Translations under genes and position numbers: made by a program
Shown: piece by piece, positions 1 through 34,817 of the stretch
Position numbering within the stretch: position 1 is the first letter of the stretch
How the letters are laid out: every line of letters starts with the position of its first letter
The notes under the pieces: model-generated
Database searches by the model: none
The model's input: the letters and a program-made list of their open reading frames with translations, nothing else
What the model was told of the DNA's origin: nothing
DNA from: Trichosphaerium sp. ATCC 40318
Lineage: Eukaryota; Protista; Tubulinea
Direction of reading: 5' to 3'
DNA: 64,000 nucleotides
NCBI GenBank assembly: GCA_038496445.1
Contig: JALMLS010000438.1
Location: 124,001 to 188,000, forward strand

Positions 1-3000
1 TTGATGAACAAGAATTCCACAGCGCCTTGCATTGTTTACCACTTGGACAGTGTTTTAAGAAAGTTACAAATGCTTCAACAGATGCTGGGGCATTTGATAC
101 AACTCGCTTAAGTAACAAGAAAAGAAAGTCTTGCCACTTCTTTTCGGCTGGTGTAATAACTACAACAGTTATGTACTTGTGATATGTAGTGTTAATGCAG
201 CACCTGAATAAGCGTTGTTTTTTTCTTTATCAACAGAATCAGTATTTGTCTTAACTTTGTAGAATAGTGGCAAAATTCTATTGTGTTGGCATTGCACTGA
301 ATAGTAATGTGAGCAACCAAATGTTGTATTTCAATATGTATAGCGTATATGACATTACCTGCCCAAATCAAAGCTGTATCGCCATGTTTATCAGCAGCAT
401 CAATATTTGCGCCAGCTTTCATCAACATTAATATGATTTTACCATGTCCAGTGTATGCTAAGTAGCATTAGCAAACACATGTTGTACATTATAATATTTT
501 CATATCTGATATTACCTGCGTGAATCAAAGCTGGCCTTCCACAATTATCAGCAGCCTCAATATCTGCGCCAGCCTTGATTAATATTGATACGACTTCACT
601 GTGTCCGCGGTATGCTAAATAGTAACGTGAATAAATATGTTGTATTGCATACGTCATATGACATTACCTGCCCAAATCAAAGCTGTATTTCCACCAAAAT
701 CCTTAGCCTCAATATCTGCGTCAGCATCACTTAATAATATTGATACGATTTTATTGTGTTGGTTTGGTTCTTCGAGGTAATGTGTTGTATCAATTGCATG
801 CATCAAAGCTGTTTTGCCATATATATCAACAGCATCAATCTTAACGTTGGCATTGATTAACATTGATATCACTTCAGGTGTACCGTTTCTTGCTAAATAA
901 TAGCATAAGCAAAGACGTTTTGTGTATATGCTAACCTGCGCCCATTAAAACTGTCATGCTGGTATTATCAATAGTGTTCACATTTGCATTGGCCGTGATT
1001 AACATTGATGCGATTTCACTATGTCCAAGTGATGCTAAATAGTAGCATTAGCAAAAAACATTTAGTATTTTATATTTTATGTGTGATATTACCTGCATTA
1101 ATCAAAGCTGTTCTTCCGTATATATTGACAGCATCAACTTTTGCACTTTTTTTGATTAATATTGATGCAATATTAACATGTCCATTGTATGCTATATTAT
1201 AAGATAAAAAAACACAGTATATTTCACATGTGACATTACCTGCATGCATCAAAGCTGTATTGCCATCTTTATCAACAGCCTCAATATTTGCGCCAGCACT
1301 GATTAATAATGATACAATTTTAGAGATTGTAAAGCATGTTTGTGCTACATAGTACGATGAGCAATATGTTGTATATTGACATTACCTGCAATAATCAATG
1401 CTGTCCTTTCACAATTATCAACAGCGTCAATTTTCGCTTTCTTATTGATTAATATTGATACGACTTCACTGTGTCCGTGGTATGCTAAATATTAATATGA
1501 GCATGTTTGTATCTCATATGTGACAGTACCTGCTCCCATCAAAGCTGTTGTTCCATATTTATTAGCAGCGTTAATATTTGCGCCAGCATTGACCAATATT
1601 GATACGATGTTACTGTGTCCGCGGTATGCTAAATAGTAATATGAGAAAACGCATGTGCTGCATTTCATAAGTGACATTACCTGCACAAATCAAAGCTGTT
1701 TTTCTAAATTTAGTAAAAGCCTCAATATTTGCGCCAGCATCGATTAATTTTGATACAACTTCACTGTATCCATTGTATGCTAAATTATACAATAAGCAAC
1801 ATACGTGGTATTTCATATGTAGCTTTACCAGCGCATATCAACGCTGTGTTGCCACATTGATCAACAGCCTCAAGATTTGCTTTGGCATTGATTAATTTTG
1901 ATACAACTTCACTGTGTCCATTGTATGCTAAATTATACAATAAGCAAACACTGTTTTTCATATTTAGCATTACCTGCACAAATCAAAGCTGTGTTTTTAT
2001 GTGTATTGATGGCTTGGATATTTACTTTGGCATTGATTAATATTGATACAATTTTAACATGTCCATTGTATGCTAAATAGCACCGTGAGAAAATACCAAT
2101 TGCATCTCATGTGACATTACCTGCACAAATCAAAGCTGTATTGCCATCTTTATCAACAGCGTCAATATTTGCTTTGGCATTGATTAATGTTGATACAACT
2201 TCACTGTGTCCGTGGTATACTAAATAGTAATATGAGCAAACACATGTTGTATCTTATGTGACAATACCTGCCCAAATCAAAGCTGTATTGCCATCTTTAT
2301 CAACAGCCTCAATATTTGCGCCAGATTTGATTAGTAATGATACAACTCCACTGTGTCCGTGGTATGCTAAATAACATGAGCAAACGCATGCTGTATCTCA
2401 TATGTGACATTACCTGCCCAAATCAAAGCTGTATTGCCACCTTTATCAACAGCCTCAATATTTGCGCCAGCACTGATTAACATTGATACCACAGTGCTGT
2501 GGCCAATATACACTAAATAATAACATGAGCAAACACAATCTGTATCTTATGTGATATTACCTGCACACATTAAAGCTGTTTCGCCATGTTTACCATCAGC
2601 GTTAATATTTGCATTGGCATTGATTAATAATGATACAACTCCACTGTGGCCAATGTACGCTAAATAGTAATGTGAGCAAACACATGCTGTATCTCATATG
2701 TGACATTACCTGCTCCCATCAAAGCTGTTGTTCCATATTTAGTAGCAGCGTTAATATTTGCGCCAGATTTGATTAATATTGATACGATTTTACTGTGTCC
2801 GCGGTATGCTAAACAGTAATATGAGAAAACGCATGTGCTGTATTTCATAAGTGACATTACCTGCCCACATCAAAGCTGTATCGCCATATTTACCACCAGC
2901 GTTAATATTTGCATTGTCATTGATTAATAATGATACCACTGTACTGTGGCCGTGGTATGCTAAATAGAACATGAGCAAACACATGTTGAACATTTTCATG

Positions 3001-5055
3001 GATAGAACAAATGACGTTTCACCCATTTCAAAAGCGTTACTTTAACTTGCTCTGTGGCAGTTGTTTATTATTTTTTCAACCAGACATTAACAAGGCTGAT
3101 CTTTTTGAGCTCCTACACTCATGAAAAAAAGGCTAAGACAATACGCCAAAACGGTTATAAAAACTAATGCCTGAGGAATGTATGAGGTCATTTATGTGAG
3201 AAGTAATGAACATCTTCTCGGATAGTTACAAAGAAGAAATCTCGATTTTTAACGGCTCTGCACATTCAATAATTGTTTCGAAGGTATACAGGCTTTAATG
3301 ATGTACGAGAGAATTGTACGCAATACAACAAACCAAGATCAAAATAACAATGAGTAGTAATCTAATTAGGAACTAAACTTTGTGTGGTTTCTATGGCGTG
3401 ATTTCAACAGGACTTGGTGGAGATTCCATGTGCGATACAACACACATTTTGAGACGGTGTACGCGAAAGCGCACAAACCATTGACATGTAGTAAATAAAT
3501 AAAGTTTTTCACAAAATAAGGATTTGCAATTTAGTAAAGTCATATATTTAAAACGTGATTTTGAGTGTGAAAACAATGCTTTGTACTCTATGTCACAATT
3601 AGAAGACTGATAAGACCTCATTGATATGACATTGAAGATCCATTCACAACAGCACTCACATTCGACGTTCGTTCTCAAACTTCATGATAGTTAGTTCATG
3701 ACATTGTCATGAGATTGTATTCTCGTTACCTTAATATACAGAAATAATAAAACCTACCACTTCACATTGAGATCTTAGGTATAACAGCGGGAGGTATTAA
3801 AGCGGTTGGATTCACAAATTTTCTTGCTCCGTTCACGTCGTTCTGCACGTAAGCGCTTTTTACGCTGTAAATAATTTGGAAATGAAAGTATTGCAGTACT
3901 TTCCGATACATTCTCATAGTTGGCTCTTGATAAAAGAAATTGTGTCGATGAGACAAAATTAAAGTGGTTGAGTTTTGTGATATTACCTGCACAAATCAAA
4001 GCTGTATTGCCATTATTATCAACAGCCTCAATATTTGCGCCAGCATTGATTAACATTGATACCACTGTACTGTGGCCAATATACACTAAATAGTAATGTG
4101 AGCAAACACATGTTGTATCTTATGTGATATTACCTGCCCACATCAAAGCTGTATCGCCATGTTTATCACCAGCGTCAATATTTGCATTGGCATTGATTAA
4201 TAATGATACGACTTTACTGTGGCCGTGGTATGCTAAATAATAGCGTGAGTTGACCATGTTGAACATCATAACATTATCGTATGTGACATTACCTGCATAA
4301 ATCAAAGCTGTCCTTCCATAATTATCAACAACATGAATACTTGCGTTGACTTTAATTAGTGACAAAACAATATCAGCGTAGCCATTTTTTGCTACAATAA
4401 GTTAGTTATTTGCTTGCCAAGCAATTGAGAACCTGCAAAAAACCACACAGGTTCAATTATGTCGACACCTGAATACTTCTCTGTCAGTCCTATCAAAGTT
4501 ATTTTAATACATAAGGCTTTTGAGAATTTAAATATTGTCAAGTCATGTCAAGTTAACGGTCTGGTTTTCTTAGTATAGTAATTTTTTTACCACGTGGAAG
4601 GCATTTACGAGTGTGGCGTAAATGGGACAAATAACGTTCCTGTACCAGAGTTTGACATAAATCTGTAACTGTCCCTTACTCAACAAAAAAAACTGTAAAA
4701 AAAAGACATGTGCAATGAGACCGTAGGGTGCTGTACTACAATTTTGAAAAAAAAAGAAGAAACTTATAAAGTCTGTTGCTGGGTTTCCTTTTTGAGAAAG
4801 TAAAAAAAAAAATTGCAGCGTTACTTGACGTGACTTGACAATAGAACTTTTTACGTTTCAACTGATGTTTGTAAAATACAGCTACGATGCTATTATTGTG
4901 GGTAAAAATTGCGATTTGTTCATGCTGTAACAAGGAAAAGTACTGACAGTCAAACCAACGTGTAGTTTTTCTTAAAAATCTGGTATGTTCAAAACTGCTT
5001 TTTCAAGTGTTTTACCTGCTAATTTTTTGGTTTTTTCACTTAGTGGTTCTGTCAT
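1..5055 (-). CDS. Ankyrin-array protein, paralog A of the ANK-PARP family (3' part, presumably incl. PARP domain, runs off the window start)
   Basis: ATG 5055 (MTEPLSEKTKKLA), matching exon 1 of paralogs B and C. 21 ankyrin exons between 204 and 4391, mostly exactly 99 nt with phase-1 GT-AG introns (e.g. 4293-4391, 3987-4085, 2861-2959, 936-1034), giving about 22 repeats (AYxGHxxVVSxLIxAGANIEAVDxxGxTALIxA). Exon 1-159 encodes KKWQDFL...FVTFLKHCPSGKQC, homologous to the post-ankyrin region of paralog C. Confidence 0.9.
2998..3975. other. About 1-kb unique insertion inside one ankyrin intron of paralog A
   Basis: Intron 2960-3986 keeps typical ankyrin-intron ends but is about 1 kb long, versus about 45 nt for its neighbours. 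No clear TIR or TSD seen; boundaries approximate. Confidence 0.6.
4533..4843. mobile_element. MITE-like element in intron 1 of paralog A
   Basis: About 25-bp TIRs, tattgtcaagtcatgtcaagttaacg (4533-4558) and cgttacttgacgtgacttgacaata (4819-4843), with TA at both outer ends. The homologous intron in paralog C is only about 53 nt. Confidence 0.7.
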
Positions 5056-8000
5056 GACAGGTTGTCACTCTTGAAGGTTAACGTAAAGCAGTATTAAGTA
5101 AGCGTGATTCAGCAGTGAGATTTTTCGCTGAAGATTTTCTGTTTTTTTGCGTTTGGTTCTAGTTGTGTTTTGCTGATTTGTTATAATTGTAACGCGGTTG
5201 TTGTGTCCTTCTTTTAACAGTTGAATCTTTAAACCAATAAACAAAAACTGTTTGTGTGTCCAAAAGGTGCCATTATCACGTTCTCTTTCAATTTAGTAAG
5301 TTTGTTTGTTGGCAGTGTTTGCCGTTTCACAGTTACACGCAGTTATAACGCAATCACTCTTCAGAGATTTACCCATTCAACTCTTAGCCGTGTATTTATT
5401 AGCGAATGCGTAGATGCAATGAGGGGAGATAGAATGGGAACCTCCAACAAAACTGTAAACTGTTAGCGAAAAGTTTTTCAAGTCTCAGAAGAAATTAGCC
5501 ATACATGAAAAGTGCCCGCAATCACGTAATTACGAGGCACGGACACATAAACATATCTTTCTACAATGATAATCGCTCCAATTTAATAGAGAAAGGTTTA
5601 AGTGGCTTTTTTAAGCACTTATACATTGGTTTGGAGCCTCGCAAACCATAAACGCGGTCCTTTTTCGCAAGACAGAATTTTTATGAACTGTTGAATGTAA
5701 GCAGTCATAACCCCTAATTTTGCCTTAGTTACGGAGCGGTAGATGGTATAACAGCAGAACGGAGAAATCGTTGAAGAAAATGCCGGTAAGCAAAAAAAAA
5801 ACGCACTCGCGTTTACAAATGAGCGGAGAAAGTTTTTATTTATGCGCACTGATAAGTTGGATTGCTGTGCAAAAAATTAGAGCTGAAACAGGCTTGGTAA
5901 GTCAGTAATTTTACATTCTTTCCTCTTTTTTATCGACGAATGACAAGACCTAGACCTGACCTAGCAGTGGTAAAAAATGAATATGTGCACACTTATGCTT
6001 TGGTTCAGTATGGAAAAAATTAGAGCTGAATTTTATTTTACAAGTCATTAATGTCAACATTCTTATTTTTTTCTGAAAAAGAGGCCACAAAAATAAAGAA
6101 AAAACATGCAGGTTAAGCAGGCTTAAATGTTCCTGATGAATCTGAAGCTGTTGTACCTTAATGCCATATACACGTGGTCTCATTGAGTAGTTGGTTCCGT
6201 GTGCTGGAAGTACTAAATACAGAAGTAACACCTTTTTTAGAAGAGTTTCAAGAGAACCTCATTCCTATTGAAAAAGTTGTCTTAAAGGTTTTTCAAGTGG
6301 AGAAAGCTTATGGAGATACCCTCTACACAAAGGTAAACATAAAAATACACTCAAAACAGTGATGGGTGCTGGTTGTACAACAGTGGGCTCACTATATGCT
6401 TACCCATAAGCTCATTTAAAGTAACTCTTACACAAAAAATAATGTGGAAGTAAAATATCTTTAGTCTACATGTCATTGCTCTTTCGAACAGAGCAAATAC
6501 GGTAAAAAATCACCTCCGTTCCAAATTTGATGGCTCAAGATCAAGGGGCACCTTCAAAAAAGAAAAACGAAAAAAACATGATTTTTCAAGGTTTTAAAAC
6601 AGGTTTTAAAAATCAGCATAAATTAGGGGACCTACTGTTGACGCATTATTGTAACAGTAATTAGACCAAATAGCCTTCATTGATTAGTATCTAAGGCAGT
6701 TTTTGTTGACTTTGAAAAGTACGCTTGCCAATGGTCTAATCAGAAAAAAAGCATGTGCGCAGTCTAACTAGTAAAATTAGAAGCCATGCATAATCTAAGT
6801 AGTGAAATTAGAGGACGTGCCCTTAAGACCCTTTGTACAACATTGCAAGCATCACGTGTAACTTCTCGGAGTGGCTTAAAGCACTTACTTGCTTACCCAC
6901 AAACTAGTATTCCAAGATCTCAGGTGACGTACGAAGTGTATGCTCTCTGGAGTTCACAAAAGATTCGCGCCACAATCACAGCAAAAGGCGATTCTAAGTC
7001 ATCTGTGTCAGCCAGCAATTTGGCTGCAGTTCCAGTTTCTGAACATTTACACTTGAGTTTTGCATAACTCTTCATGTTTTAGCTTCTTTTATTGTACAGT
7101 ATATAGCATGGCTGTACTGTTTAATTACACTACAACAAAGAAATGGTCTATCTCGAAAGATGAAAAGGTCATCTGCGTATCACTACTAATCTTACGTACG
7201 TTATCATCTCAACCTACTGTAAACGCCAACATTGCTATCCAATTTAAGTCTACAACATTTTCGTACACGTACTAGTGTACTATTGCTAACTGTAGGAAAA
7301 CCAAAGTATCACGTGCGCTATGAATCATTGTAACTGTGTTGGAATTAATTGAATGGCAATTGACTATTTAGATGGTACTAGACACGTAAGCTTCTATTTA
7401 ACTTTTACCTTTTGGAGTACTTCCTCTTTTTACCTCACCTTCCCTGGTGTTTATAAGTACCTCATAGGTAGTTTTTCTTTGCTATTAAACTAACTGTAAC
7501 CATTCAAGACCCTACTAGCGCTAAAAACCCAAAAACAGCTGTCCCCATCCCGTCTCCATCTCAAATTGCTTGATGACCCATATTTGATAAAGTTATTCTT
7601 CGTGGTAACAGTAACAGAAAAAAAGTTCGGAAACTCTGTTAGTATATGGGAAGTGCCTTCCCATCCTAAAAAAACAGCATCTCATCCTCGCCTCCCACTC
7701 ACTAACGGTATTTTTTGATCACTAGCGTAGGCCTTCTAGCGAGTTTTTTTATTTTTACCTAGCGCTCTACAATACTTAAAAAGTTTATTACTAGCGGTAG
7801 ATAGTTGTAGGATCGCATCTCGGGTATGGGTCGGGTTCTGGTCTATAACTCATCCTGCCTCCAACTTCTTCAGCTATGCGTGTACATTGTAATCATACGA
7901 CTATATCGTGCTCATTCATAAACACATTTGGTAGTTTGGGAGGAAACTGTCTCGGGTTTTTTGTTACGAAAAACTACCGGCCAGAACTCTAGTACTGTCT

Positions 8001-8138
8001 CACGATGTTTATTAGTACATGTACTCTTATAGTTTATTCTCAATTTGCTAGAAGGGATTCGCCCTTTTTGTGCGTGATAGCGTTGTTGTGTACCGCTAGT
8101 TTATGTGACAAAGCCTCAAACTTTTCGGCTTTTTCAGG

Positions 8139-11100
8139 ATGCGACAACTCTTCCTTGTTCTTTCAATATGCCTCTGTGTATTCGCAGCAGGTGCAAGGCA
8201 ATACATTGCTAAAGATGTAGATATACGTAACCGCCCTTTTGTCATGGTAAGCTCTAACGTCATCGCTGTCAACACAAAGAAGTAACTTGGTTCAGGGTAC
8301 AATTGAAGCTACCGACTTTTTCTACGACCAAGACGCTCAAACAATCGGCTGGTACGTTAAGCTGCTCAAAACTAAAGTACTGGAGTTGTTAATTCGTTAA
8401 ACCCTGTACTACGATCTAAATTCTTGCAAGTGTTCAACTTTCATGTGAACTTTTTTACCCAAAACAAAAAAAGTAGTGGAGGCTTTGCTTTCGTATCTGG
8501 ATCCATGTTGTTTTTCGTTTTGGTTTACTTTTCGTCTAACTTTCACCTACTTGAAGCACAATGCTTAAATTCGCTTTACACAGCAAAGTAGACCCACGTG
8601 ACCATTGTCGTCATTTACGGGTGATATCACAATTAAATCACAGACTTCGCTTTTTCTGCTTTTTAAGATTGGTTTTTTAATTTTCTCCGCTTATCGCGTA
8701 TGTAACTCTCGGTTCTAGGATTTACAAAGGAACAAACGCTGGATCATTGAGTGAAGCTTATATTTACAAAGAGGTACGAGAAAGTAAAGTTTTGCCATTT
8801 TTTTTTTCTGTCACGTGCTTATCTGTTTTTACGCCAGAATATTCGTCTCCGTAAATGTGACAGTGGTTGTGAAGCTTTTGGCGAAGAAAGAAACGTACCA
8901 GTACTTACATCGTCTGGTTCTCAAATAGCGCAACGAGATGGTTGTAACTGTTGGAACGTGAACCCTACTGCAGGTAACGGACAAGTTACTGAACTTTGTT
9001 TCAGTGGAAATAAAATCTGCTAGTACGTATTATTATCACGCTATTACATGCGCAACTCTTTCTTTGTTGGCTAAATCTGTTTAATCTAGCGTTAAATTCA
9101 AGAGTAACGAAGAATGGATTTTCGATCCCGCCAAAGTACAACTGAGCTCTAACTTCCCTAACAATGCTTTCCTAGAGGATCAGTACGGTTTTTTCGCAAA
9201 GCTTTTAGCTCCAATAAAAAAGAAAGCTCACCACGTTTTTTTTTAGATCTTCACGTGCTGATTGTACAGATGAGTGTGCACAAGTTTTCGATATTGTCAT
9301 GGTTCTTGATGAATCTGGAAGTATCAACGACGCAGAAGTACGTTTGTTTTTCGAAAAACACGTGATTTTTGTTTTGATAACATAAACCTTAGTGGAGAGA
9401 TTTGCTAGCATTCGCCAAACGACTTGTAAATGCCTTTAAAGTTGGTAGAAACGATGCAAATTTTGGTAAGCACAGAGTTCTTTTAATTGCGTCACTTGTT
9501 TCTTACTCTTTAATTAAGCATTGAAACTATATTCTGAGACTGGAAGAAGTCTTTTACCTCTTTCTGGAAGTAAGAGCACTATTATCAATCAACTCAACAG
9601 TAAGTACAAGCTTCTATGACGCTTTGAAGTGCTTCAATTTAACACTTCTTGTCCAGATATCGACAAGAAAAACGGTTTCACTTGTATCGGATGTGGTATG
9701 CAACTGGCATACAATGAACTCCAAAGCAATAAAAGACCAGGTGTCCCAGGTGTATGTGATATATTTTCTAGTATTCTTCGGTCTTTTTCTTACACAACTA
9801 ACACGTGATTTCTTTAGATTATCTTGACATTGACTGATGGTGTAAACAACAGACCTTGTGATAGAAATGCATGTGGATGTCAAAAGTAAGAGATTACTTA
9901 TGGGCTTTTGTAGCACGTTTTTTGAAATAACTAACGCACTGTCATAGAAATGGTGATTGTGACTGTTGCAGAGGAACACCTCCGTAAGAAACCAGATTTT
10001 TTTAGTACTTATCGCAACCCTTCATCTGATTTTCTACTTAGAGTATTTGGACCTGGTGGACAAAGATGTCAAAACTGTGGAGGAAGAGATGAACTCAATC
10101 TTTGGAGTGGTAGAGCCAAGAACGTACGTTGTGCTTTTTTTCCTTTTTTTTTTACCTTACTCAGAAACTGACGTGTTGGTTCTTTAGGCTGGATACAAAT
10201 TGGTTTCTATTGCCGTAGGTGATAACACCTCTCCACTTGATCTACAAACTATCACAAGTGACTGGCCTGCTGATCATATTGCTGTTGATAACTTCGCTGC
10301 TCTTGATGAAAAACTTCAAAACATTCTTTCTGTTATTTGCCCAGGTAGAGCCATTGTTACAAAGTTTTGGTTAACGTCTGTGTAGTAAATAATGGAAATG
10401 ATTGTGGAGTTGCTTGTAATGGTGCTTGTCACTGCGGACAAGAATGTACATGCCCTACAAGTACGTTAGGAGCAAATATCACACTTTTTCTTGAGAAGCT
10501 TTAAGGATCTGATTTTCTTTTTTTAGAGTGTGAACCAAAGGACTTCTGCCATGACTCAAAATGTATTCAGGCTGCTGGATTCGCTTGTGTAGAGACCATA
10601 AAGGATTGTTCTGATAATAACCAATGTACAACAGATAGTTGTGATCCTAAAAGTACGTTAAAACAAACAAGAAGTAGTTTTTACTAATATCTTTGTTACT
10701 TAGAACCTGGTGGATGTGTTTTTACGCCAATCACATGTGATAGTAAATCAAAGTGTATCATTGATGAATGTAAACCAAATGTTGGCGTACGTCGTTATCA
10801 GAAAGTTGGAACACTCACTGCTGCCAAAGAACTTAAAACTAACTTCTTCGTTAACCTTAGTGCACAACCAAAGATGTTGTCTGTCCAGTGTCAAACAAAT
10901 GTGAAGTACCAGTATGTGATCCTATAACAGGTTGTAGTACAAATACTATCTCAGCAGCAGACTGTAAGAGTCAAGCTCCTGCAAATACTCGGGTACTTAT
11001 TCCATAACAGCTAATTTTCTCTTTGCTTGTTAACAAATCTGTAGAACGAATGTTGGGACCATTGGTGCGATCCTAGTGATGGTTGTTTAAGAAAGAGAAA

Positions 11101-13419: not shown

Positions 13420-14012
13420 TAAGTTGTAAATCAACCAAAAAAAAAGGAGCAAAGACAGATAGTATCAAGATTTTATAAAAACCAAGCAATATTCTAATAA
13501 TCTTATTTGTTTATTTTTAATCTATGAAACTAATTCAAGTACCAAGAGAAAGAACAAATAGATGCATTTGAATGAACTGTTGTAAAAACTTAGGTTGAGC
13601 AAGGTTCGAATGGTTCGAATGGTCCGATGAAACAACTTTCTTTTGCCTTTTTTTTTGAGGAATGTTCGTTATACTCTTGATGTTTTTGTCCCAATTGTTC
13701 AACAAAACTCAGATTATGACTTGATAATGAGTGCTAAAGGGCACTGCTGCTTAAGCATGTCATGCTGGCCGAATGTCGAGTATACCAGACGAAGTCAATA
13801 GCAGTATTCATGATGCTCTGGAGTTCGTTGGTAGGAATTCATGTTGATACAGTCGATGATGCTTTGGGTGAAAGTATGCGAAGTAGCATAGCAAACTTTA
13901 AAAGTCGTACAAAACAGCCAATCACGCACCATTTTTTAGTACTACAAAAGGGTTAAGAGATTGTGAGCTCCTAGAAAACTCAAAATTACACCAACTTTGC
14001 TTTAGAAAAAAC

Positions 14013-17650: not shown

Positions 17651-17901
17651 AATACAGCTAATCTACAAATCAAAAATTGCCTTAGATGACTAGCTAAGAC
17701 ATGTGCGGAATAAAGAGGCCGGCAGGAACTTTTACTTCGCCTACTGTCACAGCATTGAACGTTTCTAGAGATCTGATGACGTATTTTTGGCCATTGGTGT
17801 ACCACCATGTACTTGTAAAACAAAGGCAGGATAAAGAAAGGGTTTGTTTAATTAACAATGACGGAAAATCTCGTCTAGACACGTGTCTGATTATTTTTTG
17901 T

Positions 17902-19158
<1,257 letters not shown>

Positions 19159-22800: not shown

Positions 22801-23145
22801 TTGAACTAACTTTTTTTTTCTTTATGATCAGTGACGTTCAAAATGTTCAATGTAGATAATATTGGTTATGTTACTAAATCAAGGTTTTTTGATATGTTAT
22901 CACTTATTTACGAGATGTATGGATTACAAGATAGTCGTGAAGAAATACGTGTTTATGTTTACATGGTTTTCGAAATGGTTGGAAAGAAGGATATGCTTTC
23001 ACTTGGAGACTTTAAAGAAGCTGTATTTATACAACCTCTTATAATGAAATGCTTCAAATTAGATTGTACACAACCTATTAAGAATGTAACTCTTTGTGAA
23101 GCTCAAGGAGGGAAGCTATTTGAAGATAAAAAAGTAAAAAAGTAA
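19894..23145 (+). CDS. TBC-domain Rab GTPase-activating protein with C-terminal EF-hands
   Basis: [10 protein letters not shown]|VW, IEK|DVPRT (R-finger), GYCQSMN (Q-finger), [21 protein letters not shown]-hand-like LFTVLDEDN and [13 protein letters not shown]. Confidence 0.9.
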
Positions 23146-23404
23146 AAAAAGTCCGACGATGTTGTAATTCTGTTCTCTATGTTCTGTCAAATGCATTTCT
23201 TTTCTACCATCATTGCTAATCACTCCGAACCTTCATACAACGCTCACTAGTATTGCACTGCCCCCTCAAAAGCCACCTTTCATGGGATCAGTATTTCGCT
23301 TCGTTGACCTGAGTGAGACCTTTCTCAGGATTACTTTTGACCACAACTCCGGCGGAATAGCAATTACGAAGGCATTTATCCGTAAAGCAATATCATTTAA
23401 CGAA

Positions 23405-24709
23405 ATGGCCGAAAAATGCTTAAAAACGACAACAACTGACCTGGTAGCACTCCCAGTCGAAGTATTAACTCATATTCTCGAACAAGGAACATTTACTCTC
23501 CGAGCAGCGCAAACATGCCGCTTATTACGAGATATCGTCCACAACCACGTCGGATACGGTAAAATCGATGTTAATACGGAGTCCGAAGCTAAAAGCCTTT
23601 CCGGAAGTCCTCTACTGAAGAATACCGCCCTCTCGCTTTGTAAATTTAATGATGTAAAGAACAGTCATCTGCATTTACTTGCAGGTGTACATACAATTAA
23701 TGTAGCAGGTACAGATGTGTCAGATGAAGGTTTGCTTGCATTAACAGGAGTACACTCTATCAACTTATCTGGTTGTGAATCAATAACAGATGAAGGCATC
23801 AAGGCATTAGCAGGCGTACACGATATCAACTTAGCTTATTGTGGATCAATAACAGATGAAGGCATCAAGGCATTGGCTGGTGTGCATACCATCAACCTTT
23901 ATGAGTGTACATCAATAACAAATGAAGGCATCAAGGCATTGCCAGGTGTACATACCATAAGCCTACGAAATTGCCAATCACTAACAGATGAAGGCCTAAA
24001 GGCGTTGGTGGGTGTTCACAATATAGACCTATCTTATTGTAAATCGATAACAGATGAAGGTATGAAGGTACTGGGAGGCGTACATACCATCAACCTACGC
24101 AATTGCCAATCAATAACAGATGAGGGTTTAAAGTCACTGGCGGGTGTACACAATATTATTCTATCTTATTGTAAGTCAATAACAGATGAGGGTGTCAAGG
24201 CTTTGGCAGGTGTACACACTATTGCTCTATCTAATTGTCAATCAATAACAGATGAAGCTTTAAAGGGATTAGCAGGTGTACACACTATCGAACTGCTTAA
24301 TTGTCAATCAATATCAGATGAAGGTGTCAAGGCGTTGGCAGGTGTACATAATATTAATCTACAGAGTTGTAAAGCGATAACAGATGAAGGTGTCAAGGCT
24401 TTGGCCGGTGTACACACTATTGATCTATCTGTGTGTAAACTTATAACAGATGAAGGTATCAAGGCGTTGGCAGGTGTGCATAGTATCAGCCTACGCAATT
24501 GCCAATCGATAACAGATGAAGCTTTGAAGGCGTTGGCAGGTGTACATACCATCAGCCTACGCAATTGCCAATCAATAACAGATGAGGGTGTCAAGGCACT
24601 AGCTGTTGTACACAAAATTGATTTATTTGGCTGTAATTCAATAACGGATGAAGGCATAAAGGAGTTACAAGCACATACTATAATTTCAAAAAAAAAGTTC
24701 AAAAAATAA
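23405..24709 (+). CDS. Intronless F-box/LRR protein with 15 tandem 21-22-aa LRRs
   Basis: F-box-like LVALPVEVLTHIL...AAQTCRLLR after ATG 23405 (the ORF is open further upstream). Repeats GVHxIxLxxCxSITDEGxKALA. Confidence 0.9.
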   Translation: MAEKCLKTTTTDLVALPVEVLTHILEQGTFTLRAAQTCRLLRDIVHNHVGYGKIDVNTESEAKSLSGSPLLKNTALSLCKFNDVKNSHLHLLAGVHTINVAGTDVSDEGLLALTGVHSINLSGCESITDEGIKALAGVHDINLAYCGSITDEGIKALAGVHTINLYECTSITNEGIKALPGVHTISLRNCQSLTDEGLKALVGVHNIDLSYCKSITDEGMKVLGGVHTINLRNCQSITDEGLKSLAGVHNIILSYCKSITDEGVKALAGVHTIALSNCQSITDEALKGLAGVHTIELLNCQSISDEGVKALAGVHNINLQSCKAITDEGVKALAGVHTIDLSVCKLITDEGIKALAGVHSISLRNCQSITDEALKALAGVHTISLRNCQSITDEGVKALAVVHKIDLFGCNSITDEGIKELQAHTIISKKKFKK

Positions 24710-25373
24710 ATATTTCTTCATGTTAACTCAGCATGTCCTTAACTGTTAAGATTTTACCGAGCTTCTATTCTATGAATATCATCAAGTTTAAGTTTCTTAC
24801 GTTACACAATTGCAGTAAACCTGAGGCTGAAATAATATTACATATTGAGATACACTCCTGGTTAGTCACATGTAAAACGTCATCTTTTATCTTTGGGTAA
24901 AGTACGTACTTGGTTTGATTAATGATTAATTTGATCCTCACACGGAGTACCAAGTTGTTCTATCCATCTAGGTGTTGCCTGTGCAATGCACATGTAGAAA
25001 AGGATTAACAGCCGTTTCAGTGGCGTTTGAGATAGACATCTACAAAGTAGGCGTGTTGTACAACTTGTGAGATCTCACCCGTTACAGTACATTGGTAACG
25101 GTATCTACGATACTACCCCTGCTGTGTGCACAGGCACACAGATGAACTAAGTTATAGTTCTGAGTAACGTTGACCACGCACCAAACGTATTCTTACAATT
25201 CAACACAAGGTACGCAAAATAGCTGAAAAATACTCTTTTACTAACATGTTGGTAGAGTGGACCAAAAAAAAGCACACGGCATTTTAAATTCCAAATCTGT
25301 TTACTACACGTATGTCATTTAACTCGCGTATAAGAACATTATTTTATAACCTGAAAAACGTTACCTGCTGTTT

Positions 25374-25712
25374 TTTTCAAAACAAATCGTTGATGCTCAA
25401 GCGAGCTACGAATGGTCTAGTGCGCTCCTAAACAGTGTCAAACTACACATTCCGACACTGTCATTTTGGTTGGTGGCTTTTTTTTTTCTTCGTTTTGAAA
25501 AAAAACGTGCGCAAAATCTGGCGTTTTATTGTTAACTCTTACAATTTACATTGTCATTGCAGCATTTTTGGTAGTGGAAAAACAAAAGTTTTAATCGAAA
25601 AAAAAGCAGCTACCAATCAAAATGACAGTGTCGGAATGTGTAGTTTGACACTGTTTAGGAGCGCACTAGACCATTCGTAGCTCGCTTGAGCATCAAAAAT
25701 TTGTTTTGAAAA
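25374..25712. mobile_element. Foldback/MITE-like long inverted repeat
   Basis: Perfect 79-bp arms at 25390-25468 and 25618-25696, extendable imperfectly to about 115 bp. T/A-rich spacer, no coding capacity. Confidence 0.85.
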
Positions 25713-25923
25713 TTATGGATGTCTTTTAATTACAAAACTCTTGTCACGATGTTATCTCAAATAATAAGTATACAGTCACCTATGGCTGTTCTATAGAATG
25801 AGCAAAAGAAAAACACGTGCTCAGTTTTAAAAAAACGTTTGGTTTTTTCTTACGGCGTGAATATCCAATCCTTCTCACATTCACTAGACCAAATTGCAAT
25901 TATAAACACCAAAAGAACCTTCC

Positions 25924-28900
25924 ATGGCAGAACCACATAACGAAGAAAACCCGAAGTTAACAGGTCAAAAAACCAATGCTATTTTTTTTTAAGTTTATTT
26001 ATTGAAATACGTAGTTGAAGCAACCAACAAGCTTGATTGTGATGACTGCGCGCATGTACTTGAAGTTGTGTTCTTATTTACAGGTGTTGTAGTTTCTTCA
26101 ATCAAACAGCTAACCGCGATATTAGTATGTAATGGACACAATAAACTTGTTTCTACCTTGATTGAAGTAAATGTAAATATTAACGCTGCAGACAAGAATG
26201 GACACACACCTTTAATACACGCAGGTAATGTCATTTAACACTACGTAATTTAGCTTACTTCATCTTAGCTTCTAGAGGACTTAATGAAATTGTGTTAAGA
26301 TTAATAAAAGCAGATGCTAATATCAATGCTGTTGATAAATTTGAATGGACAGCTTTAATACATGCAGGTAGGTGTCTGAGCTAATTCCAAATCTACTCAT
26401 GTATTATTTAGCAATAAATGGTCACCATGAAGTTGTACATACATTAATAGAAGCAAAAGCAGCTATTGATGCAGAAGACGTCAATAAATGGACAGCGTTA
26501 ACACATGCAGGTAGCCATTTAACATAACTAACAATTAAGCTTAACATATCATAGCGTGTGAAGGACACAATGATGTTGTTTCAATATTAATAAAAGCTGG
26601 TGCTAATATTAATACGTTTGATAACGGTAAACGGACAGCTTTAATACATGCAGGTAGTTTCATTTAATACAAAAATACTATTAAGTTTAACTCATATCAT
26701 AGCGTGTGAAGGACATAATGATGTTGTTTCAAGATTAATAGAAGCAAAAGTTGACCTTAACAAACAAACTAAAATGCATAAGCGCACAGCTTTAATTGTT
26801 GCAGGTGGAGTGAGACAATACGCACAAAACAACTTACATTCCTGTAGCACAGAAAGGCCACTATGAAATTGTGTCAACATTAACAAAAGCTGGTGCAAAT
26901 GTTAATATGTTTGATGAAAATAGATGTACAGCCTTGATGATTGCAGGTAAGTAGCTTCTACAACTAAATATTAACACATCTATAGCACAGAACGGTCACA
27001 TTGAAATTGTGTCAACATTGTTAGCAGCAGGCGCAGAAAAAGAGTTGGTCGATGAAGATGGAGAAACAGCTTTAATGAGCGCAGGTATTGTCACAACATG
27101 AAATACAACCAAGGCTAATAAAAACTTCAGTGTATCACAATCACAATGAAGTTGTGTCAATATTATTAAAAGCAAACGCAAATATTGATGTTCGTGGTGA
27201 ATATAAACGGACACCTTTAATGCTTGCAGGTAATGTCATTTACCACAAAGTGAAATGAAGTGCAACTCATATCTTCCTTAGCGGTGACAGGACATGCTCA
27301 AGTTGCTTCAACATTAATAGAAAAACAAGCAAACATTAATGCAAAAGATAGTGATGGACGTACAGCTTTAATACATGCTGGTAGTGTCAGATATACTAAG
27401 TTCAAATCTAACTCACTTCATCTTTAGCACTAAATTGTCACCATGAAGTTATCGCTGTATTAACAAAAGCAAAGGCAGACATCCTTGCTGTTGATAACAA
27501 TAATTGGACGGCCTTAATGCATGCAGGTAGTATCACAATAAAGTACACCCATTTGTGGCTCACAATATTGTATAGCTACAAAAAGCAATGATGAGGTGGT
27601 TGCACACTTAATCAAAGCACATGAAAATATTCCTGCTATTGATGATTGTGGTGAACAAGTAGACAAAGATATATTTAATTCAGGTTGTATTTCAATTTGT
27701 TAATGGTTACTAACACCATTTAGGAGAAAAACCTTCGTTGTTTTATAAATTGTTAAAGGCAACTAATGGTATCATAACCAGTAAAGTACTATGGCAAGAT
27801 TTTTTTCGTTTTGTGTTTATCAGAGTGATTTCAGAACACCTTGTGTCTGTTGAATCATTTATAACATTCTTAACACATTGTCCAAATGGTCAAAAAAGCG
27901 AAAAACTGTGGGCAGCATGTTTGTCCGTCATTAAAGACCAATATTGGAAAGAAACCACAGTAGAATGGTTACAATACTTGGTATGCACTATTGTTTTATT
28001 GAATTTGCTGATTAAGTAAAGCCATCACGCTCTTATTTTAAACTTGCAATGCAAAAAGGTATCTATTTTTTAATACGTGTATTTGATCCCAAAAAAACCT
28101 TGTCTCCAGTACGTCTGTTCAACAATACTATATTTTAATAATCCCTTCTTTTTATAGGACTTTTGGCACTGTGATGGAGAACTAATGAAAGGTATATTAT
28201 GTGATTTGCCTGACTCCATGTGGAGTTGTAAAATTCAATATGATTCTCCAAAAGAAGGGTGTAGGTAAAATTAACCCTTGCAACAAATACTTCAATTCAA
28301 ATAGTACCTAGAAGTGATAACGCATGGGATTTGAACCCACGTTTGGAATATGCATATAATTGGGACAGGTCTAAAAACACGTGCGTTCAATGTCATATTT
28401 TTGGTTTTAAGTAATTCAATTTTGTACAAAGAGGTATTATTACAAAAGCGACACACTACAGAACGCTGAATCTTCTTGATTCCAGTGACAAAGTAGCTGT
28501 CAGAGAATTCAAGATCCTTCAACAAGAGATGTCAAAAATGCATGGCTATGACAAATACAATATCATTGAAGCGACTCTTGTTTACAATGAAATCTTGACT
28601 GAAAGCTTTGGTCGATACAATGTCATACTAAACCACAGGCATCAGTACGTTTACTAAGACCATTTAATGAGTTCTAACATGTGTTTATAATAGAGAACTA
28701 CCTACATTGTTTAAAAAAGATTGGAGGAAGGATGTACAAAAGAAGTACAAAGAGAGCGTTTACGTAAAATACAATGCCGTTCCCACTCAACAGTATCAAA
28801 GTGCTGATAATAAAGACAGTTCTGAAAAAGGGGTAATTGAAAATAAAGTACTTACACTCACATACCTGTTATTTAGGTACCAGTGATATTGATGGTTCAT

Positions 28901-30028
28901 GGAACAACTGAGAAAGCAGCTTACAGTATTGTCAAGGCTGGATTTGGAACTGTAAGTTCTTTGGATGCTGGATACTATGGTCAAGGCATTTATTTTACAG
29001 TATGTACAAAACAGTGTTGCATGTTATTCACTTTGCTAATTCCACTTCAGCGGAGTATACAGTATGCCTGTTCGTATGGTAATGGAGGAACCAAAGAAAA
29101 AACAGTTATTTTGAGTCTTGTCACTCCTGGCAACGTATATCCTGTACATATGCAAACAATACTTTAATCACTATGTATTAATTGATAATTGCAAAAAGGT
29201 AAACCCAAGCGATAAGTTGGAAGGACAGCCAATAAAACCGGGATACCAAAGTCACTACACATTGGTTGATCGCAAAGGTAGACCAGTTACAGAAGATAAA
29301 GTGACCAATGCAGTGTATGATGAGCTTGTTATTGGACAAGGTACACGGAAAAACAAATAATATTTCCCGCTACAACTATTGTTATGTCATTAGATACTCA
29401 AGCTGTTGCTCGCTATGTCCTCAAACTTGCACCAAACAAGCAAAGTAAAAAAAGAATCAAAACAAAACCCAAGAAAGGAGATAAAAAAGGTGCAAACGAA
29501 CAAACTAAAAAAGATCAAGTTTCAGAGCTTGATGATGGTTCTAATGATGATCTTTCCGATGATGAAGATAATTTTATTAGTAACCGGTAATACATTACAA
29601 TTTCTAGTTCTTAAACTTATTGTTGTACTAGAAAATTGTGGGCTGCCCATGATGTGGACGCAACCGGTTACCAACAATCAAGTACTAATGTCAATCTCGA
29701 ACAAGAAGCTCAAGTAGCTAGCCAAGAAGTTGAGAAACCAAAGAAGAGCAATGCAAGTACAAAGGAACTTCAGGAAGCAAAACATGAAGTATACAAACTG
29801 AAGAAGAGTAACGAGAATTTACAGCAAACCAATGCAAAGCAACAACAACATATTGCCAACTTAACACAAGACAATATGAAACTTGCGAAAAGCAACGCCA
29901 ACCTGAAGCAAGACAATTCAACTAAGCAACAAGACATTATCAAGTTATCAAAAACCGTGACTAGCTTACAAGAGACCAACGCCGTGCTACTTGCTAAAAT
30001 AGTTCGCCTTGAAGGCACAAACAAGTAG
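25924..30028 (+). CDS. Ankyrin-array + helical region + PARP catalytic domain + coiled coil (paralog B)
   Basis: MAEPHNEENPKLT. 11 single-repeat phase-1 ankyrin exons at 26126-27683 (nine of 99 nt, one of 102, one degenerate of 108). PARP motifs MVHGT, AGYYGQGIYFT, SIQYA and YDELVIGQDTQAVARYVL. Lys-rich/acidic linker, then C-terminal coiled coil ending LEGTNK*. Confidence 0.92.
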
Positions 30029-30680
30029 CTTTCCATGACCTATAACCAATATTAATTAGCATAAATAAACAATCTTATTTTACTCTTTGTTTATTGTCCT
30101 ATCATACATCAAGAATTGTCGTTTAAAGGATGAGCAGCTTTCCTATACTAAATGAGTTTTTTGTGAGAATAGGCTACAAGCACCACAGCGCCAATATAGA
30201 GTGAACGGTAACGTGACACACCAATGTGATGCCACCAAAGTGCTTATGGGCTGTATTTGCTACAGGGTTAAAACGCGTGTCCAGTGCGACTCGGTGCACC
30301 GGTTGTACTCATACAGTGTTAGGTTGTGTACTGTGGTGAGTCAACTCTAGTTCAGTCACATGCCCGAGTCCGGGTTAAAATCAACACTAAGTCATCTACT
30401 GTACTTACTAAACACCACTGTTTTTATGACTTTGGGACTCATTTTGGTTGATTGTGCATGTTGAAACAGGTTGAATCAGCCTCTGTCAGGGTTAAAAACA
30501 GACCTGAGTGCGATTCACCCTTTATGAGGGATACTCATGTCACCCAAAAAATTTTGAGTCGACTTTGCGTTGAAAATGTTATGACATCAAACAGTATTTT
30601 CTTGATGTAAACAAGGCACAATAAGGTATGCTAAATAATTGTTTATTGTATTAATGAACGTTGGCTGTTCATTACATTAC

Positions 30681-33600
30681 CTACTTGTTTGTGCCTTCAA
30701 GTTGGGCTATTTTGGCAAGTAGGCTAGTGATGGTTTGTGATAAGTTGATATTGTCTTCCTTCAGTTTGAGATTCTCTTGTTGCAAGTTGTTGACGGTTTC
30801 TGTTAAGTTGACACTTTGTTGTTGCTTTGAATTGGTTTGCTGAAAGTTCTCGCTGCTCTTCTTCAGTGTGTCTACTTCATGTTTTGCGTCATTGGTACTT
30901 GATTGTTGGTCATCAGTTGTACCCACGTGGGCACCCCACAATTTACTAGCACAATAATAAACAAGAAAAAGAATTATGAGAAAAGAAATAGTAAAGTCTT
31001 ACCGGTTACTAATAAAATTATCTTCATCATCGGAAAGATCATCATCTGAATCATCATCTTTTCGCTCTGAAACTGTGATTGGTTTAGTTTATTTGAACAA
31101 CATGCCAAGATATTTGTGTACCAGTCTTTTTAGCAGTTTTCTTGGCCTTTTTTGTTTTTTTCTTGTTTTTACGCTCGCTCGGTTTTGGAGCAACTTTGAT
31201 GATATAGCGAGCAACAGCTTGAGTATCTGAACACAGTGTTAGTTTATAGATCATAATTTCGCTTTTGTTTTTTTTCGTGTACCTTGTCCAACAACAAGCT
31301 CATCGTACACTGCACTGGTCACTTCATCTTCTGTGACAGGTCTACCTTTGCGATCAACCAATGTGTAATGACTTTGGTATCCTGGTTTTATTGGCTGTCC
31401 TCTCAGAGTGTCTGTTGGTTTTACCTTTTTGTTATCATTAATACATTCATGGATATAAACTTGTTTATGTACAGGAAATACGTTGCCAGGAGTGACAAGA
31501 CTCAAAATAAGCGTTTTTTCTTTTCTTCCTCCTGTTGTATCATACGATGCAGCATATTTTATACTCCTCTTTATAAAAGCAGTTAATATAACAGTGAGAC
31601 CTTGTGCTTTTACATACTGTGAAGTATATTCCTTGACCATAGTATCCAGCATCCAAAGCACTGACAGTTCCAAATCCAGCCTTTACAATACTATAAGCTG
31701 CTGCTTCACTTGTTCCGTGAACCATCATTATCACTGGTGACTACATAACAGGTATGTGAGTGTAAGATACTATGTGATAAACGTTACCCCTGCTTCCGAA
31801 CTGTCTTGGTTGTCAGTACTTTGATATGGCAGAGTGGGTATTGCGTTGTATTTTGAGTAAACACCCTCTTTGTACTTCTTTTTGATGTCATCTCTCCAAC
31901 CTTGCTTCTTAAACAATGCAGGTAGTTCTCTATATACATGTTAGAATTCATTAAAGACTTTAGCAAACGTACTGATGCCTGTGTTTTACTACAACATTGT
32001 ATCGACCAAAGCTTTCAGTCAAGATTTCATTGTAAACAAGAGTCGCTTCAACAACATCATATTGATCATGGCCATGCATTTTAGACATCTCTTCTTGAAG
32101 GATCTTGAGTTCTCTGACAGATACTTTGTCACTGGAATCAAGAAGATTCAGCGTTCTGTAGTGTGTCGCTTTTGTATTAATACCCCTTTTTTCAAACTAA
32201 GTAAAGAAAGCGACAATATGACTTTGAACGCACGTGTTTTTAGATCTGTCCCAATTATTTGCAAAATATAATCGGCGATTTAGATCCCATGGGTTCTTAC
32301 TTTTTAATCCTTGAGATTCTTTAGTACTTCTTAATTAAGAACATGTAGTGACTTGTACCAACTGTGATTGCATTGGATGCGTCGAGCCCATAGGATGCAT
32401 TGGATAATATCCTTTCTTGTACCCATGTATTACTCCATGCATCATCAGGCATATCAGATACGATACCCAGCATTAATCCTTCATCTCGTTTCCAAAAGCT
32501 CTGTACAAAAGTAATTACAAAGTACAATACCAATTTCGTGGAGATAATACCTGTAAAGATACGCCTTTATCACAGCAATACGAACATATCAGATAACTAA
32601 CACCTTTTTCCATTACCAGGTTAAAGTAAAACCGTGTTGGCTTAAGTTGTGTGAGCGGTAAAAAACTTAACATATTATTTCATACCAAGTCTTGAAGCCA
32701 ATCAAGACTTTGTCCAAAACCACATTCCAAGTTTGATGGACAAGATTTCCACAGTTCGCGGCATTGTTTACCACTTGGACAATATTTCAAGAAAGTTACA
32801 AACGCATCAACAGCACCAGGGTCATCTGCTATCACTCGCTCCAACAACATGGCAAGAAAGTCTTGCCACTTTTTTTCGTCTGGTATTATACCTAAAACCA
32901 AACAACTAAGTAAGAGCTCAAACTTTGAAATTCTAACTCACGAGTACCACTTCTTTGTTTGTCACCAGCATCAAGATCTGCATTGGCTTTGAAGAATAGA
33001 GGTAACATTGTATTGTGCCCTTTTTTTACTGAATAGTAACATTAGCAATTACGTAAAATGTCACATACACTTGCCGGCGATAATCAAAGCTGTGTTTCCA
33101 TCTTTATCGACAGCATCAATATTTGCACCAGCATTAATTAACGCTGACACCAATTTATTGTGTCCTTTTTTTGCTGTATTGTAACATGAGCAAATATATT
33201 GTATATTTTAGTACCTGCAATAATCAAAGCTGTATTTCCACGTTTATCAACAGCCTCAATATTTGCTTTGGCATCAATTAATGTCAATGCAATTTCAGTG
33301 AGTCCCCTTTTTGCTAGTTCTGTGAGCGAGGATATGTTGTATTTCGTATGTCACAATACCTGAATAAATCCAAGCTGTCTTTCCTTCTGTGTCAACAGCC
33401 TCTTTATTTGCACTGGCTTTAATTAGTGTAGATAACACTTCATTATGACCTTCATAAGCTAAATAATCACGTGAGCAAATACATTATGTCTCATATGTAA
33501 AATGAAATTACCTGCGTAGATCAAAGGTGTTTTACCATATGTATCAGCAGCCTCAATATTTGCATTGGCATTGATTAGTGCCGATACAACTTTGTTGTAT

Positions 33601-34817
33601 CCTCTTTTGGCTAAATAGAAACACGTGAGCAAAGACATGTTGTATCTTATAGTTGACAGTACCTGCATAAATCAAAGATGTTCTTCCATATCCATCAATA
33701 GCCTCTATATTTGCAGTGGCATTGACTAGCATCGATACAATTTCGCTATGTCCTTGTTTTGCTAAATAGAACATTAACAAACACATTTTGTATCTTGTTA
33801 TTACCTGCATTCAGCAAAGCTGTTGTTCTGAAGTTGTACGCTAAATAATAATGTAAGCGTGATAGATACGTTGTATTCACATGTCAGTACCTGCATCAAT
33901 TAGCGCTGCCTTTTCATCTTCATCAGCAGCCTCAATATATTTTTTATTGGCATCAATTAACATTGATACGATTTTCTCCTTTCCTTCCGTTGCTAAATAG
34001 TAAGGTAAGTAAACAAAAGTTGATGCCATATAATATGGATATTACCTGCATAAATCAAAGCTGAATCTCCATACTTATCAACAGCATTAATATTTGCTTT
34101 GGCGTTAATCAACATTGATGCGATTTTATTACATCCTTTTCTTGCCACTTCACTGAATCCGTAGAATGCTAAATAACAACATGAGCAAAGACATGTCGTA
34201 TCTTGTATGTCGACTTTCGTGTTTTTAAAACACACATTTTTTGGACAAGAGCATAAAATTTTGAGTTTTCTAGCGCATTCGATCACGTAAACCCTTTGTT
34301 GGAGTAAGAAAAGGTACGCAATAGGACTTTGCCTACCAAATCGCCCCAAAGAAAACTCATAATTTTATGCTTTTGTCCGAACTTTTCTTTTCAGGTAGAA
34401 TTTACTTTGTAATTATCTGTGGGCATAAGGTATTCATCACAAAAGTTCTTTGCCCAAAAAAAAAAGTCCAGTTTTCGAAAGTCAACCTTATTTTCCTTCC
34501 ACGTTGACAATGTAACATTTACCTGCGCTTATCAAAGCTGTATATCCAATCCTATCCGCAACATCAACATTTATATTCGCTTTAATTAATGAAGAAACAA
34601 TATCAGCGTAGCCATTTTGGGCTACAATAAGTTAGATAACTTCTTGCTTAAACAAACTTTTTCGTACCTGCATAAAACCACGCAAATTTTATAAGACCAC
34701 TTGAAACTTTATTGGTCTGTTTAACTAGTAATAAAGGTATTGTTAACAACCATATAATAATAAAGCTCTGTTCTCACCTGCTACTTGTTGGTTTTCTTCA
34801 CTCTGTGGCTCCGTCAT
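30681..34817 (-). CDS. Ankyrin-array + helical region + PARP catalytic domain + coiled coil (paralog C)
   Basis: MTEPQSEENQQVA. 10 ankyrin exons at 32948-34621, including a 123-nt fused exon and a 36-nt truncated one. 14-nt micro-exon 32551-32564. MVHGT, GYYGQGIYFT, SIKYA, YDELVVGQDTQAVARY. Ends LEGTNK*. Convergent with paralog B. Confidence 0.92.
34209..34486. mobile_element. Small inverted-repeat element in an ankyrin intron of paralog C
   Basis: 11-bp terminal IR gtcgactttcg / cgaaagtcaac, and a 31-bp internal IR at 34241-34271 / 34350-34380 (28/31 matches). Host intron is 354 nt versus about 45 nt typical. Confidence 0.6.

Follow-up and report, generated by a model that had tools for sequence, protein, structure and literature searches.

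What does a gene family do that places an array of ankyrin repeats, nearly one repeat per exon, in front of a PARP catalytic domain, and do such arrays behave like the recognition part of an immune receptor? The question is raised by three paralogous genes, here called A, B and C, in a 64,000-nt stretch of the genome of Trichosphaerium sp. ATCC 40318 (contig JALMLS010000438.1, positions 124,001 to 188,000; hereafter, the window), which an initial annotation made from the DNA letters had presented as candidate exon-shuffling immune receptors. By curated gene models, Pfam and a structure model, we found a clustered multigene family in which a variable ankyrin array is combined with a coiled coil and with a PARP domain bearing a histidine-tyrosine-glutamate (H-Y-E) triad, in agreement with that description. 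Our reading, to which we give a probability of roughly 0.6, is that A, B and C are members of an expanding, clustered family, specific to their lineage, of target-recruiting ADP-ribosyltransferases of the cytosol or nucleus, tankyrase-like in the way they would work but not tankyrases. The N-terminal ankyrin solenoid, variable in length and surface, would recruit a protein partner, the C-terminal coiled coil would oligomerise the protein, and the H-Y-E PARP domain would use NAD+ to ADP-ribosylate the recruited partner or the protein itself; the logic of tankyrases may have been reached independently, with other linker and oligomerisation modules. A role in defence, with NAD+ consumption as the effector mechanism, is a possible conjecture by analogy.

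Gene models and domain organization

Searches with a motif and with a DNA profile of the repeat located ankyrin units at three sites only in the window: 223-4397 (-), 26122-27652 (+) and 32952-34627 (-). The window is AT-rich eukaryotic DNA (GC ~36%) with very short introns, and the models of the three genes were curated by hand, guided by the DNA alignment of B with C and by splice joints in RNA contigs (Table 1). All reading frames are open, and the introns follow the GT-AG rule save for one GC-AG intron in C (donor after 33075). The stop codons of the convergent genes B and C are 652 nt apart. All genes follow one layout, in which exon 1 leads into the ankyrin array, a cap, a helical region, the PARP domain, a basic/acidic linker and a coiled coil, the part from the PARP domain onward being read in B and C. 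As initially annotated, the three paralogs have the 40-nt exon 1 and the helical region after the repeats in common, and the proposed counts of 22, 11 and 10 units correspond to 21 units plus the cap in A, 10 plus the cap in B, and eight full units, a 36-nt fragment exon and the cap in C. Neither tRNA genes nor Rfam families were detected in the window, and PADLOC gave no meaningful match for the family.

Table 1. Positions of genes A, B and C, their parts and a related relic in the window
Feature	Position	Strand	Remarks
Gene A, 5' part	1..5055	-	23 exons seen, 801 codons, frame intact; window edge cuts inside a helical exon
A exon 1	5016..5055	-	40 nt, ends in phase 1; homologous in A, B and C
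A ankyrin array	359..4391	-	21 units: 18 single 99-nt exons, one 105-nt exon, one 225-nt two-unit exon; curated model
A cap exon	204..296	-	Degenerate ankyrin, phase 1 on both sides; curated model
A helical region, start	1..159	-	WQDF...FVTFLKHCPSGKQC
Gene B, complete	25924..30028	+	23 exons, 986 aa; several introns RNA-supported, some via close paralogs
B exon 1	25924-25963	+	40 nt, ends in phase 1; homologous in A, B and C
B ankyrin array	26126..27526	+	10 one-unit exons (nine of 99 nt, one of 102 nt), phase-1 introns on both sides
B cap exon	27576..27683	+	108 nt
B helical region	27724..28380	+	Exons 13-16, Cys/His-containing; without Pfam family
B PARP domain	28432..29340	+	Exons 17-21; triad codons H 28898-28900, Y 28991-28993, E 29322-29324
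B lysine-rich stretch, then acidic linker	29394..29586	+	Putatively like a nuclear localisation signal
B coiled coil	29632..30028	+	Ends at TAG stop
Gene C, complete	30681..34817	-	23 exons, 881 aa; convergent with B
C exon 1	34817-34778	-	40 nt, ends in phase 1; homologous in A, B and C
C ankyrin array	33075..34621	-	Eight full units (six of 99 nt, one of 102 nt, one of 123 nt) and a 36-nt fragment exon
C cap exon	32948..33028	-	81 nt
C helical region	32234..32891	-	
C PARP domain	31283..32185	-	Triad codons H 31719-31717, Y 31626-31624, E 31301-31299
C linker and coiled coil	30681..31226	-	
Relic of the family's last, coiled-coil exon	35570..35800	-	62% protein identity to C; stop codon out of register

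Exon cassettes of the ankyrin arrays

Single 99-nt exons carry 33 of the 39 full units of the three genes, and the rest lie on exons of 102, 102, 105 and 123 nt and on the 225-nt two-unit exon. All array exons are multiples of three and have a phase-1 intron on both sides, at the same site of the repeat in A, B and C (TALxxA/AxxGH, the slash marking the intron). Because of this arrangement, units can be gained, lost or skipped with the frame kept, and the reading frame survives turnover of the array, as had been proposed. Exon 1, the cap exon and the first helical exon have the same phase as the array exons. The ankyrin repeats of human ANK1 lie largely on single 99-bp exons, which would give one repeat per exon a precedent for this fold. 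Pfam recognizes the units (ankyrin families PF12796 and PF00023): Ank_2 (PF12796) scored 34.4 bits on the two-unit exon of A (669-890), against a cut-off of 27.3 bits, and 130 bits on the spliced array of a transcript, L001.

A few units depart from the regular pattern. The 225-nt exon of A (892-668, -) holds two units because the donor of the intervening intron is gone, and the remnant of that intron is read in frame as a short linker. In C, a 36-nt exon (33840-33805, -) between phase-1 introns encodes only the last third of a unit, and the 123-nt unit (34046-34168, -) contains a partial internal duplication, its frame being kept by the phase-1 introns on both sides. Three introns on the array side are long (A 2960-3986, 1027 nt; A 4392-5015; C 34169-34522, 354 nt). 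We found no repeat copies of them elsewhere in the window and no convincing open reading frame in the first one.

Evolution of the arrays and of the enzyme half

The PARP domains of B and C are 79% identical in DNA, introns included, and 80% identical in protein, with a synonymous divergence (dS) of 0.39 and a ratio of non-synonymous to synonymous divergence (omega) of 0.29, which indicates purifying selection, whereas their ankyrin halves are saturated (dS about 1) and only 42% identical in protein. The PARP domain and coiled coil had been called near-identical in the two genes; both parts are indeed present in each, but at the 80% just given for the PARP domain and at ~68%, with indels, for the tail of linker and coiled coil. 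Since B and C are convergent, their 3' halves form an inverted repeat of ~1.7 kb (B 28312-30028, +; C 32302-30681, -), the arms of which lie ~650 nt apart and are 79% identical over the first 1.4 kb and less so in the coiled-coil exon. This similarity runs through exons and introns alike and the arrays are saturated; therefore, the common origin of the enzyme halves is more recent than that of the arrays, through partial duplication or through conversion. The inverted repeat could favor conversion between B and C.

Two further observations concern short sequences. In the intron that starts at 28381-28400 (+) in B and at 32233-32214 (-) in C, the initial ~20 nt (GTGCGTTCAA.GTCATAT) are almost identical, unlike the remainder, which has diverged. 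In the window as a whole, the palindrome CACGTG is found 49 times against 9.3 expected (the highest of 100 shuffles had 22), for example, at 25814, 28378, 32231 and 35023. The start codon of B has one copy 110 nt upstream and that of C another ~200 nt upstream, and one spans the same conserved exon/intron boundary in both genes.

Within the arrays, the nearest neighbor of a unit belongs to its own gene for 29 of 35 units (permutation p = 2e-4), and identity between units of different genes reaches 80% at most. Exon shuffling between genes, as initially put forward, is thus not supported by the three genes tested. Positional conservation between genes was found only for the first unit (A1 versus C1, 74%) and the cap. 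In A, non-adjacent pairs of units are 93-94% identical and differ mainly at exposed residues, and blocks of two units, introns included, occur as duplicates (274 nt, 89% identical; 299 nt, 84%). The array introns of this gene are on average 71% identical to each other (maximum 96%; shuffled controls, 59%). The likeness of the introns and the duplication of whole blocks indicate that the evolving unit is a 147-nt exon-plus-intron cassette. The units of B are old and not homogenised (mean identity 63.5%), and C is intermediate. Nearest neighbors are adjacent in five cases only, which points to growth by block duplication or conversion rather than by slippage of single units. The arrays change by duplication, deletion and conversion of these 147-nt cassettes within each gene.

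To describe selection on the units of A, we computed omega along their minimum spanning tree, and the binding surface was defined as seven canonical positions, namely the sites randomised in designed ankyrin repeat proteins (DARPins) and a groove position. Omega was 0.89 over all positions, 0.87 at the seven canonical binding-surface positions, 1.66 at other exposed positions, and about 0.50 (0.3-0.6) in the core. Along the same tree edges, introns had diverged by 0.22 and exons by 0.18. From these omega values and the similar divergence of introns and exons, it follows that exposed residues drift near neutrality on a constrained scaffold. The diversifying selection suggested for ankyrin positions was therefore not recovered, since the canonical binding sites fall below the other exposed ones and introns diverge like exons.

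The PARP domain and its relatives

HGT, GIYF and DELV motifs are found in the PARP domains of both B and C. In database and structure searches, single exons of B and the paralog transcript P0001 stood in for the spliced B and C proteins. When one B exon was used as a phmmer query, 1.8 billion representative proteins yielded two close spliced relatives, P0001 and P0002, both from the same Joint Genome Institute (JGI) transcriptome sample; in the former, ~240 nt of PARP coding sequence match B with 100% identity. The two proteins match the Pfam PARP family (PF00644) with 30.9 and 36.5 bits, respectively, against a cut-off of 26.7 bits, and one B exon alone stays under it (18.4 bits). A homologue search with P0001 found one close relative only, the matches of another with P0154 were dominated by generic ankyrin proteins, and a metagenome scan, to whose scope the JGI sample did not belong, found relatives at 35-42% identity only.

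An AlphaFold model of the PARP domain, built from an alignment of 76 sequences, had a predicted local distance difference test (pLDDT) score of 89.9 and a predicted template modelling (pTM) score of 0.88. Foldseek matched this model to tankyrase 1 first (at 17% identity) and then to PARP12 and PARP1, with E values from 6e-11 to 2e-9 and target-normalised TM-scores up to 0.75. The sequence profile of the 76 relatives, however, was closest to ZAP/PARP13, PARP12, PARP10, PARP14 and PARP15 among solved structures; the profile was needed here, since P0001 alone had only a marginal match in the Protein Data Bank (PARP12, E = 0.044). The catalytic H and Y of PARP12 align with those of HGT and GIYF, respectively, and the glutamate of DELV stands directly before the strand aligned with FVIF of ZAP, that is, at the third triad position; we take it to be the equivalent of E988 of PARP1. 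All 76 relatives have the GIYF tyrosine and at least 90% of them the DELV glutamate, and some distant relatives have Q for H. The triad had been assigned to the PARP1/tankyrase type: its residues are present, but by sequence profile the domain is nearest to the PARP10/12/13/14/15 group. The claim that a tankyrase SAM domain is lacking held for P0001, P0002 and the B exons in Pfam searches, and the paralogs differ in unit number (10 to 22). The same searches found neither WGR nor PRD in these sequences, and no NB-ARC or NACHT NTPase switch was detected by Pfam in the family proteins.

In relatives of this PARP clade, the domain is joined to ANK-SH3, Roc-COR, TSP1 or DUF4116 modules. Three of them (P0037, P0076 and P0115), encoded by eukaryotic transcripts in public metatranscriptomes and Logan assemblies, combine the same divergent PARP clade with Roc-COR GTPase modules. 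To our knowledge, this architecture has no published description. Only one relative of the clade has a named source, the amoeba Arcella intermedia.

Expression

In public runs, the splice joints of RNA contigs fall on the predicted sites or a few bases away. Joints were found for the B introns 28109-28157, 28833-28876, 29000-29050, 29144-29198, 29341-29393 and 29587-29631, some of this evidence coming from contigs of close paralogs in which one or two bases are added at the joint. Over ~100 nt, several contigs show 0 or 1 differences from B, many others are 90-95% identical, and the HGT/GIYF exon alone is covered by at least five distinct contigs at 90% identity or more in one small run. These distinct contigs, together with the many at 90-95%, indicate that several paralogs are expressed. 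The transcript L001 contains seven whole spliced ankyrin units, the cap, a retained intron, the helical region, the PARP domain and the coiled coil. It is a mosaic, with 100% identity to B along ~240 nt and to C along at least 60 nt, which could reflect gene conversion or a chimeric transcriptome assembly, and we counted it as evidence for neither.

Helical region, linker and coiled coil

The helical region, with Cys and His residues, occupies ~220 aa between the cap and the PARP domain, and the pattern WQDF...FVTFLK.CP.G..LW..C is common to A, B and C. The coiled coil, of 90-130 aa, is one long helix in the model of the paralog P0001 (pLDDT 82-94); this protein was folded as a single sequence, with an overall pLDDT of 45 that makes the model unusable except for the coiled coil.

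In the lysine-rich linker, C has a 49-nt intron (31121-31073, -) that must be spliced out because it holds an in-frame stop; the shorter counterpart in B (29487-29520, +) is coding. This is either the gain of an intron or an intron turned coding between close paralogs. The orphan coiled-coil exon at 35570-35800 has no PARP or ankyrin sequence upstream and was probably left behind by a partial duplication immediately upstream of C.

Alternative readings

Several points weigh against seeing A, B and C as target-recruiting ADP-ribosyltransferases. Activity, partners and cellular location are putative, and the type of ADP-ribose product is not readable from the H-Y-E triad because some H-Y-E PARPs are mono-transferases only. 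In the public runs examined, no RNA contig covers the ankyrin arrays of A, B or C. A Pfam search assigns the helical region to no family, and an Atlas search gave weak PARP-accessory-like leads (a hint of PARP_reg) with a best score of 0.67. The 36-nt and 123-nt exons of C, as well as the 225-nt and the degenerate 105-nt units of A, would disrupt the stacking of the repeats if they were in the protein, and to judge from these irregular units, parts of the arrays may be decaying. Taken further, such decay would make the whole cluster a set of relics of a former expansion drifting to pseudogenes, its variation being neutral. Omega near 1 between units, the dead intron, the fragment exon and the irregular units all suit that idea, as does the orphan coiled-coil relic, but we regard it as very improbable: three frames of 800-986 codons run over 22 introns each with no stop codon or broken splice site, omega is 0.29 in the PARP domain, the core positions of the ankyrin units are constrained, and spliced RNA matches B almost without differences, one transcript being identical over ~240 nt. 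The fragment exon of C would also suit the fold better if it were skipped, and the 40-plus array exons, all multiples of three with the same intron phase and with introns unusually alike within a gene, might suggest a repertoire of the Dscam kind, in which regulated or random skipping produces many array isoforms per gene. Nevertheless, tandem duplication of one exon-plus-intron cassette gives the same layout automatically, the one array transcript (L001) has its seven units whole and consecutive with no irregular joint, and the odd RNA joints have non-canonical ends and come from diverged paralogs, so that such a repertoire seems to us highly unlikely. There is likewise only a slight chance that skipping through cassettes with look-alike introns has wired a splicing-generated recognition repertoire to an ADP-ribosylating effector in a single-celled eukaryote.

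The remaining alternatives concern what the enzyme would be for. Bacteria, plants and animals commonly use NAD+ depletion for defence, and an engaged array might turn the domain into an NADase or drive runaway auto-modification, leading to growth arrest or cell death instead of the modification of a defined target. The catalytic glutamate is kept and the coiled coil could activate the enzyme by clustering, but the sequence does not separate this from ordinary protein ADP-ribosylation, and a death effector would be costly in many expressed copies that have no recognizable regulatory switch domain; we attach very little probability to it. The broader proposal is a germline-diversified family of immune sensor-effectors, whose arrays would bind proteins from viruses or intracellular bacteria under diversifying selection and trigger a defence based on ADP-ribosylation. 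Several paralogs are expressed, the arrays are variable on a constrained enzyme half, and the nearest solved relatives by profile are vertebrate ZAP/PARP13, PARP12, PARP10 and PARP14. ZAP and PARP12 are linked to antiviral defence. Moreover, relatives of the PARP clade carry Roc-COR, a module of candidate receptors in brown algae (PMC3341825, PMC11378527), and the ankyrin arrays of fungal NOD-like receptors (NLRs) are highly conserved and contain hypervariable sites (PMC4986451). Against the proposal, the canonical binding positions show no non-synonymous excess, introns have diverged at the same pace as exons, in line with exposed residues drifting neutrally, the B units are old and not homogenised, and the proteins have neither an NTPase switch nor a known death or signalling domain. 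We therefore consider an immune sensor doubtful. The defence idea is reasonable by analogy with brown-algal receptors, fungal NLRs and antiviral PARPs, but no test that we ran favors it over neutral repeat turnover in regulators.

Comparison with known systems

If A, B and C are target-recruiting ADP-ribosyltransferases, an expanded, clustered family with 10 to 22 units on a constrained enzyme half would be a natural case of retargeting one enzyme by modular binding units. Were the partners pathogen proteins, a recognition system based on ADP-ribosylation would be added to the sparse knowledge of protist immunity; were they host proteins, the family would show the independent evolution of tankyrase-like logic. 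The PARP clade itself has hardly been studied; in amoebae and environmental transcriptomes it also occurs with Roc-COR, SH3, TSP1 and other modules.

Fusions of ankyrin repeats to PARP domains have arisen several times independently (PMC2964712, PMC4245714), and the present one is set apart by its linker, its oligomerisation module, its divergent catalytic clade, and an expanding array built of cassettes. Tankyrases (PARP clade 4; ankyrin, SAM and PARP) resemble the family in their N-terminal ankyrin array, a self-association module and a C-terminal H-Y-E PARP domain. However, they have a SAM domain, in place of which the coiled coil after the PARP domain would provide oligomerisation in A, B and C, and they lack a counterpart of the unrelated ~220-aa helical region between array and PARP domain. 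Clade 4 is set at 15-18 repeats (PMC2964712), a range that the paralogs described here exceed on both sides with their 10 to 22 units, and although tankyrase 1 is the top structural match, the sequence profile is nearer to the PARP10/12/13/14/15 group. The clade 1A ankyrin PARPs, of the Dictyostelium ADPRT3 type, also combine N-terminal ankyrin repeats with a PARP domain and are found in protists including Amoebozoa (PMC2964712, PMC4245714), but they carry WGR and PRD before the catalytic domain, and neither was detected in our family. PME-5 of Caenorhabditis elegans is a related ankyrin PARP of uncertain clade. The vertebrate mono-ADP-ribosyltransferases PARP10, PARP12, PARP14 and PARP15, together with ZAP/PARP13, are the best profile matches among solved structures; nevertheless, they have CCCH, WWE or macro domains instead of ankyrin arrays and mostly lack the catalytic glutamate, which A, B and C keep.

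The LRR-ROCO and NB-ARC-TPR candidates of brown algae (PMC3341825, PMC11378527) are likewise encoded with one repeat per exon in a frame-neutral manner, and they too are expanded and variable in repeat number. Unlike them, A, B and C combine an ankyrin repeat with a PARP effector, have no ROC-COR or NB-ARC switch, and show no exchange of cassettes between genes in the window. The fungal NLRs whose ankyrin, TPR or WD repeats are highly conserved internally (PMC4986451) are similar to A in that their arrays evolve by unequal recombination or conversion. They differ in having NACHT or NB-ARC domains, which are absent from A, B and C; in the family described here, only A is partly homogenised, and the variation within the window shows no detectable positive selection.

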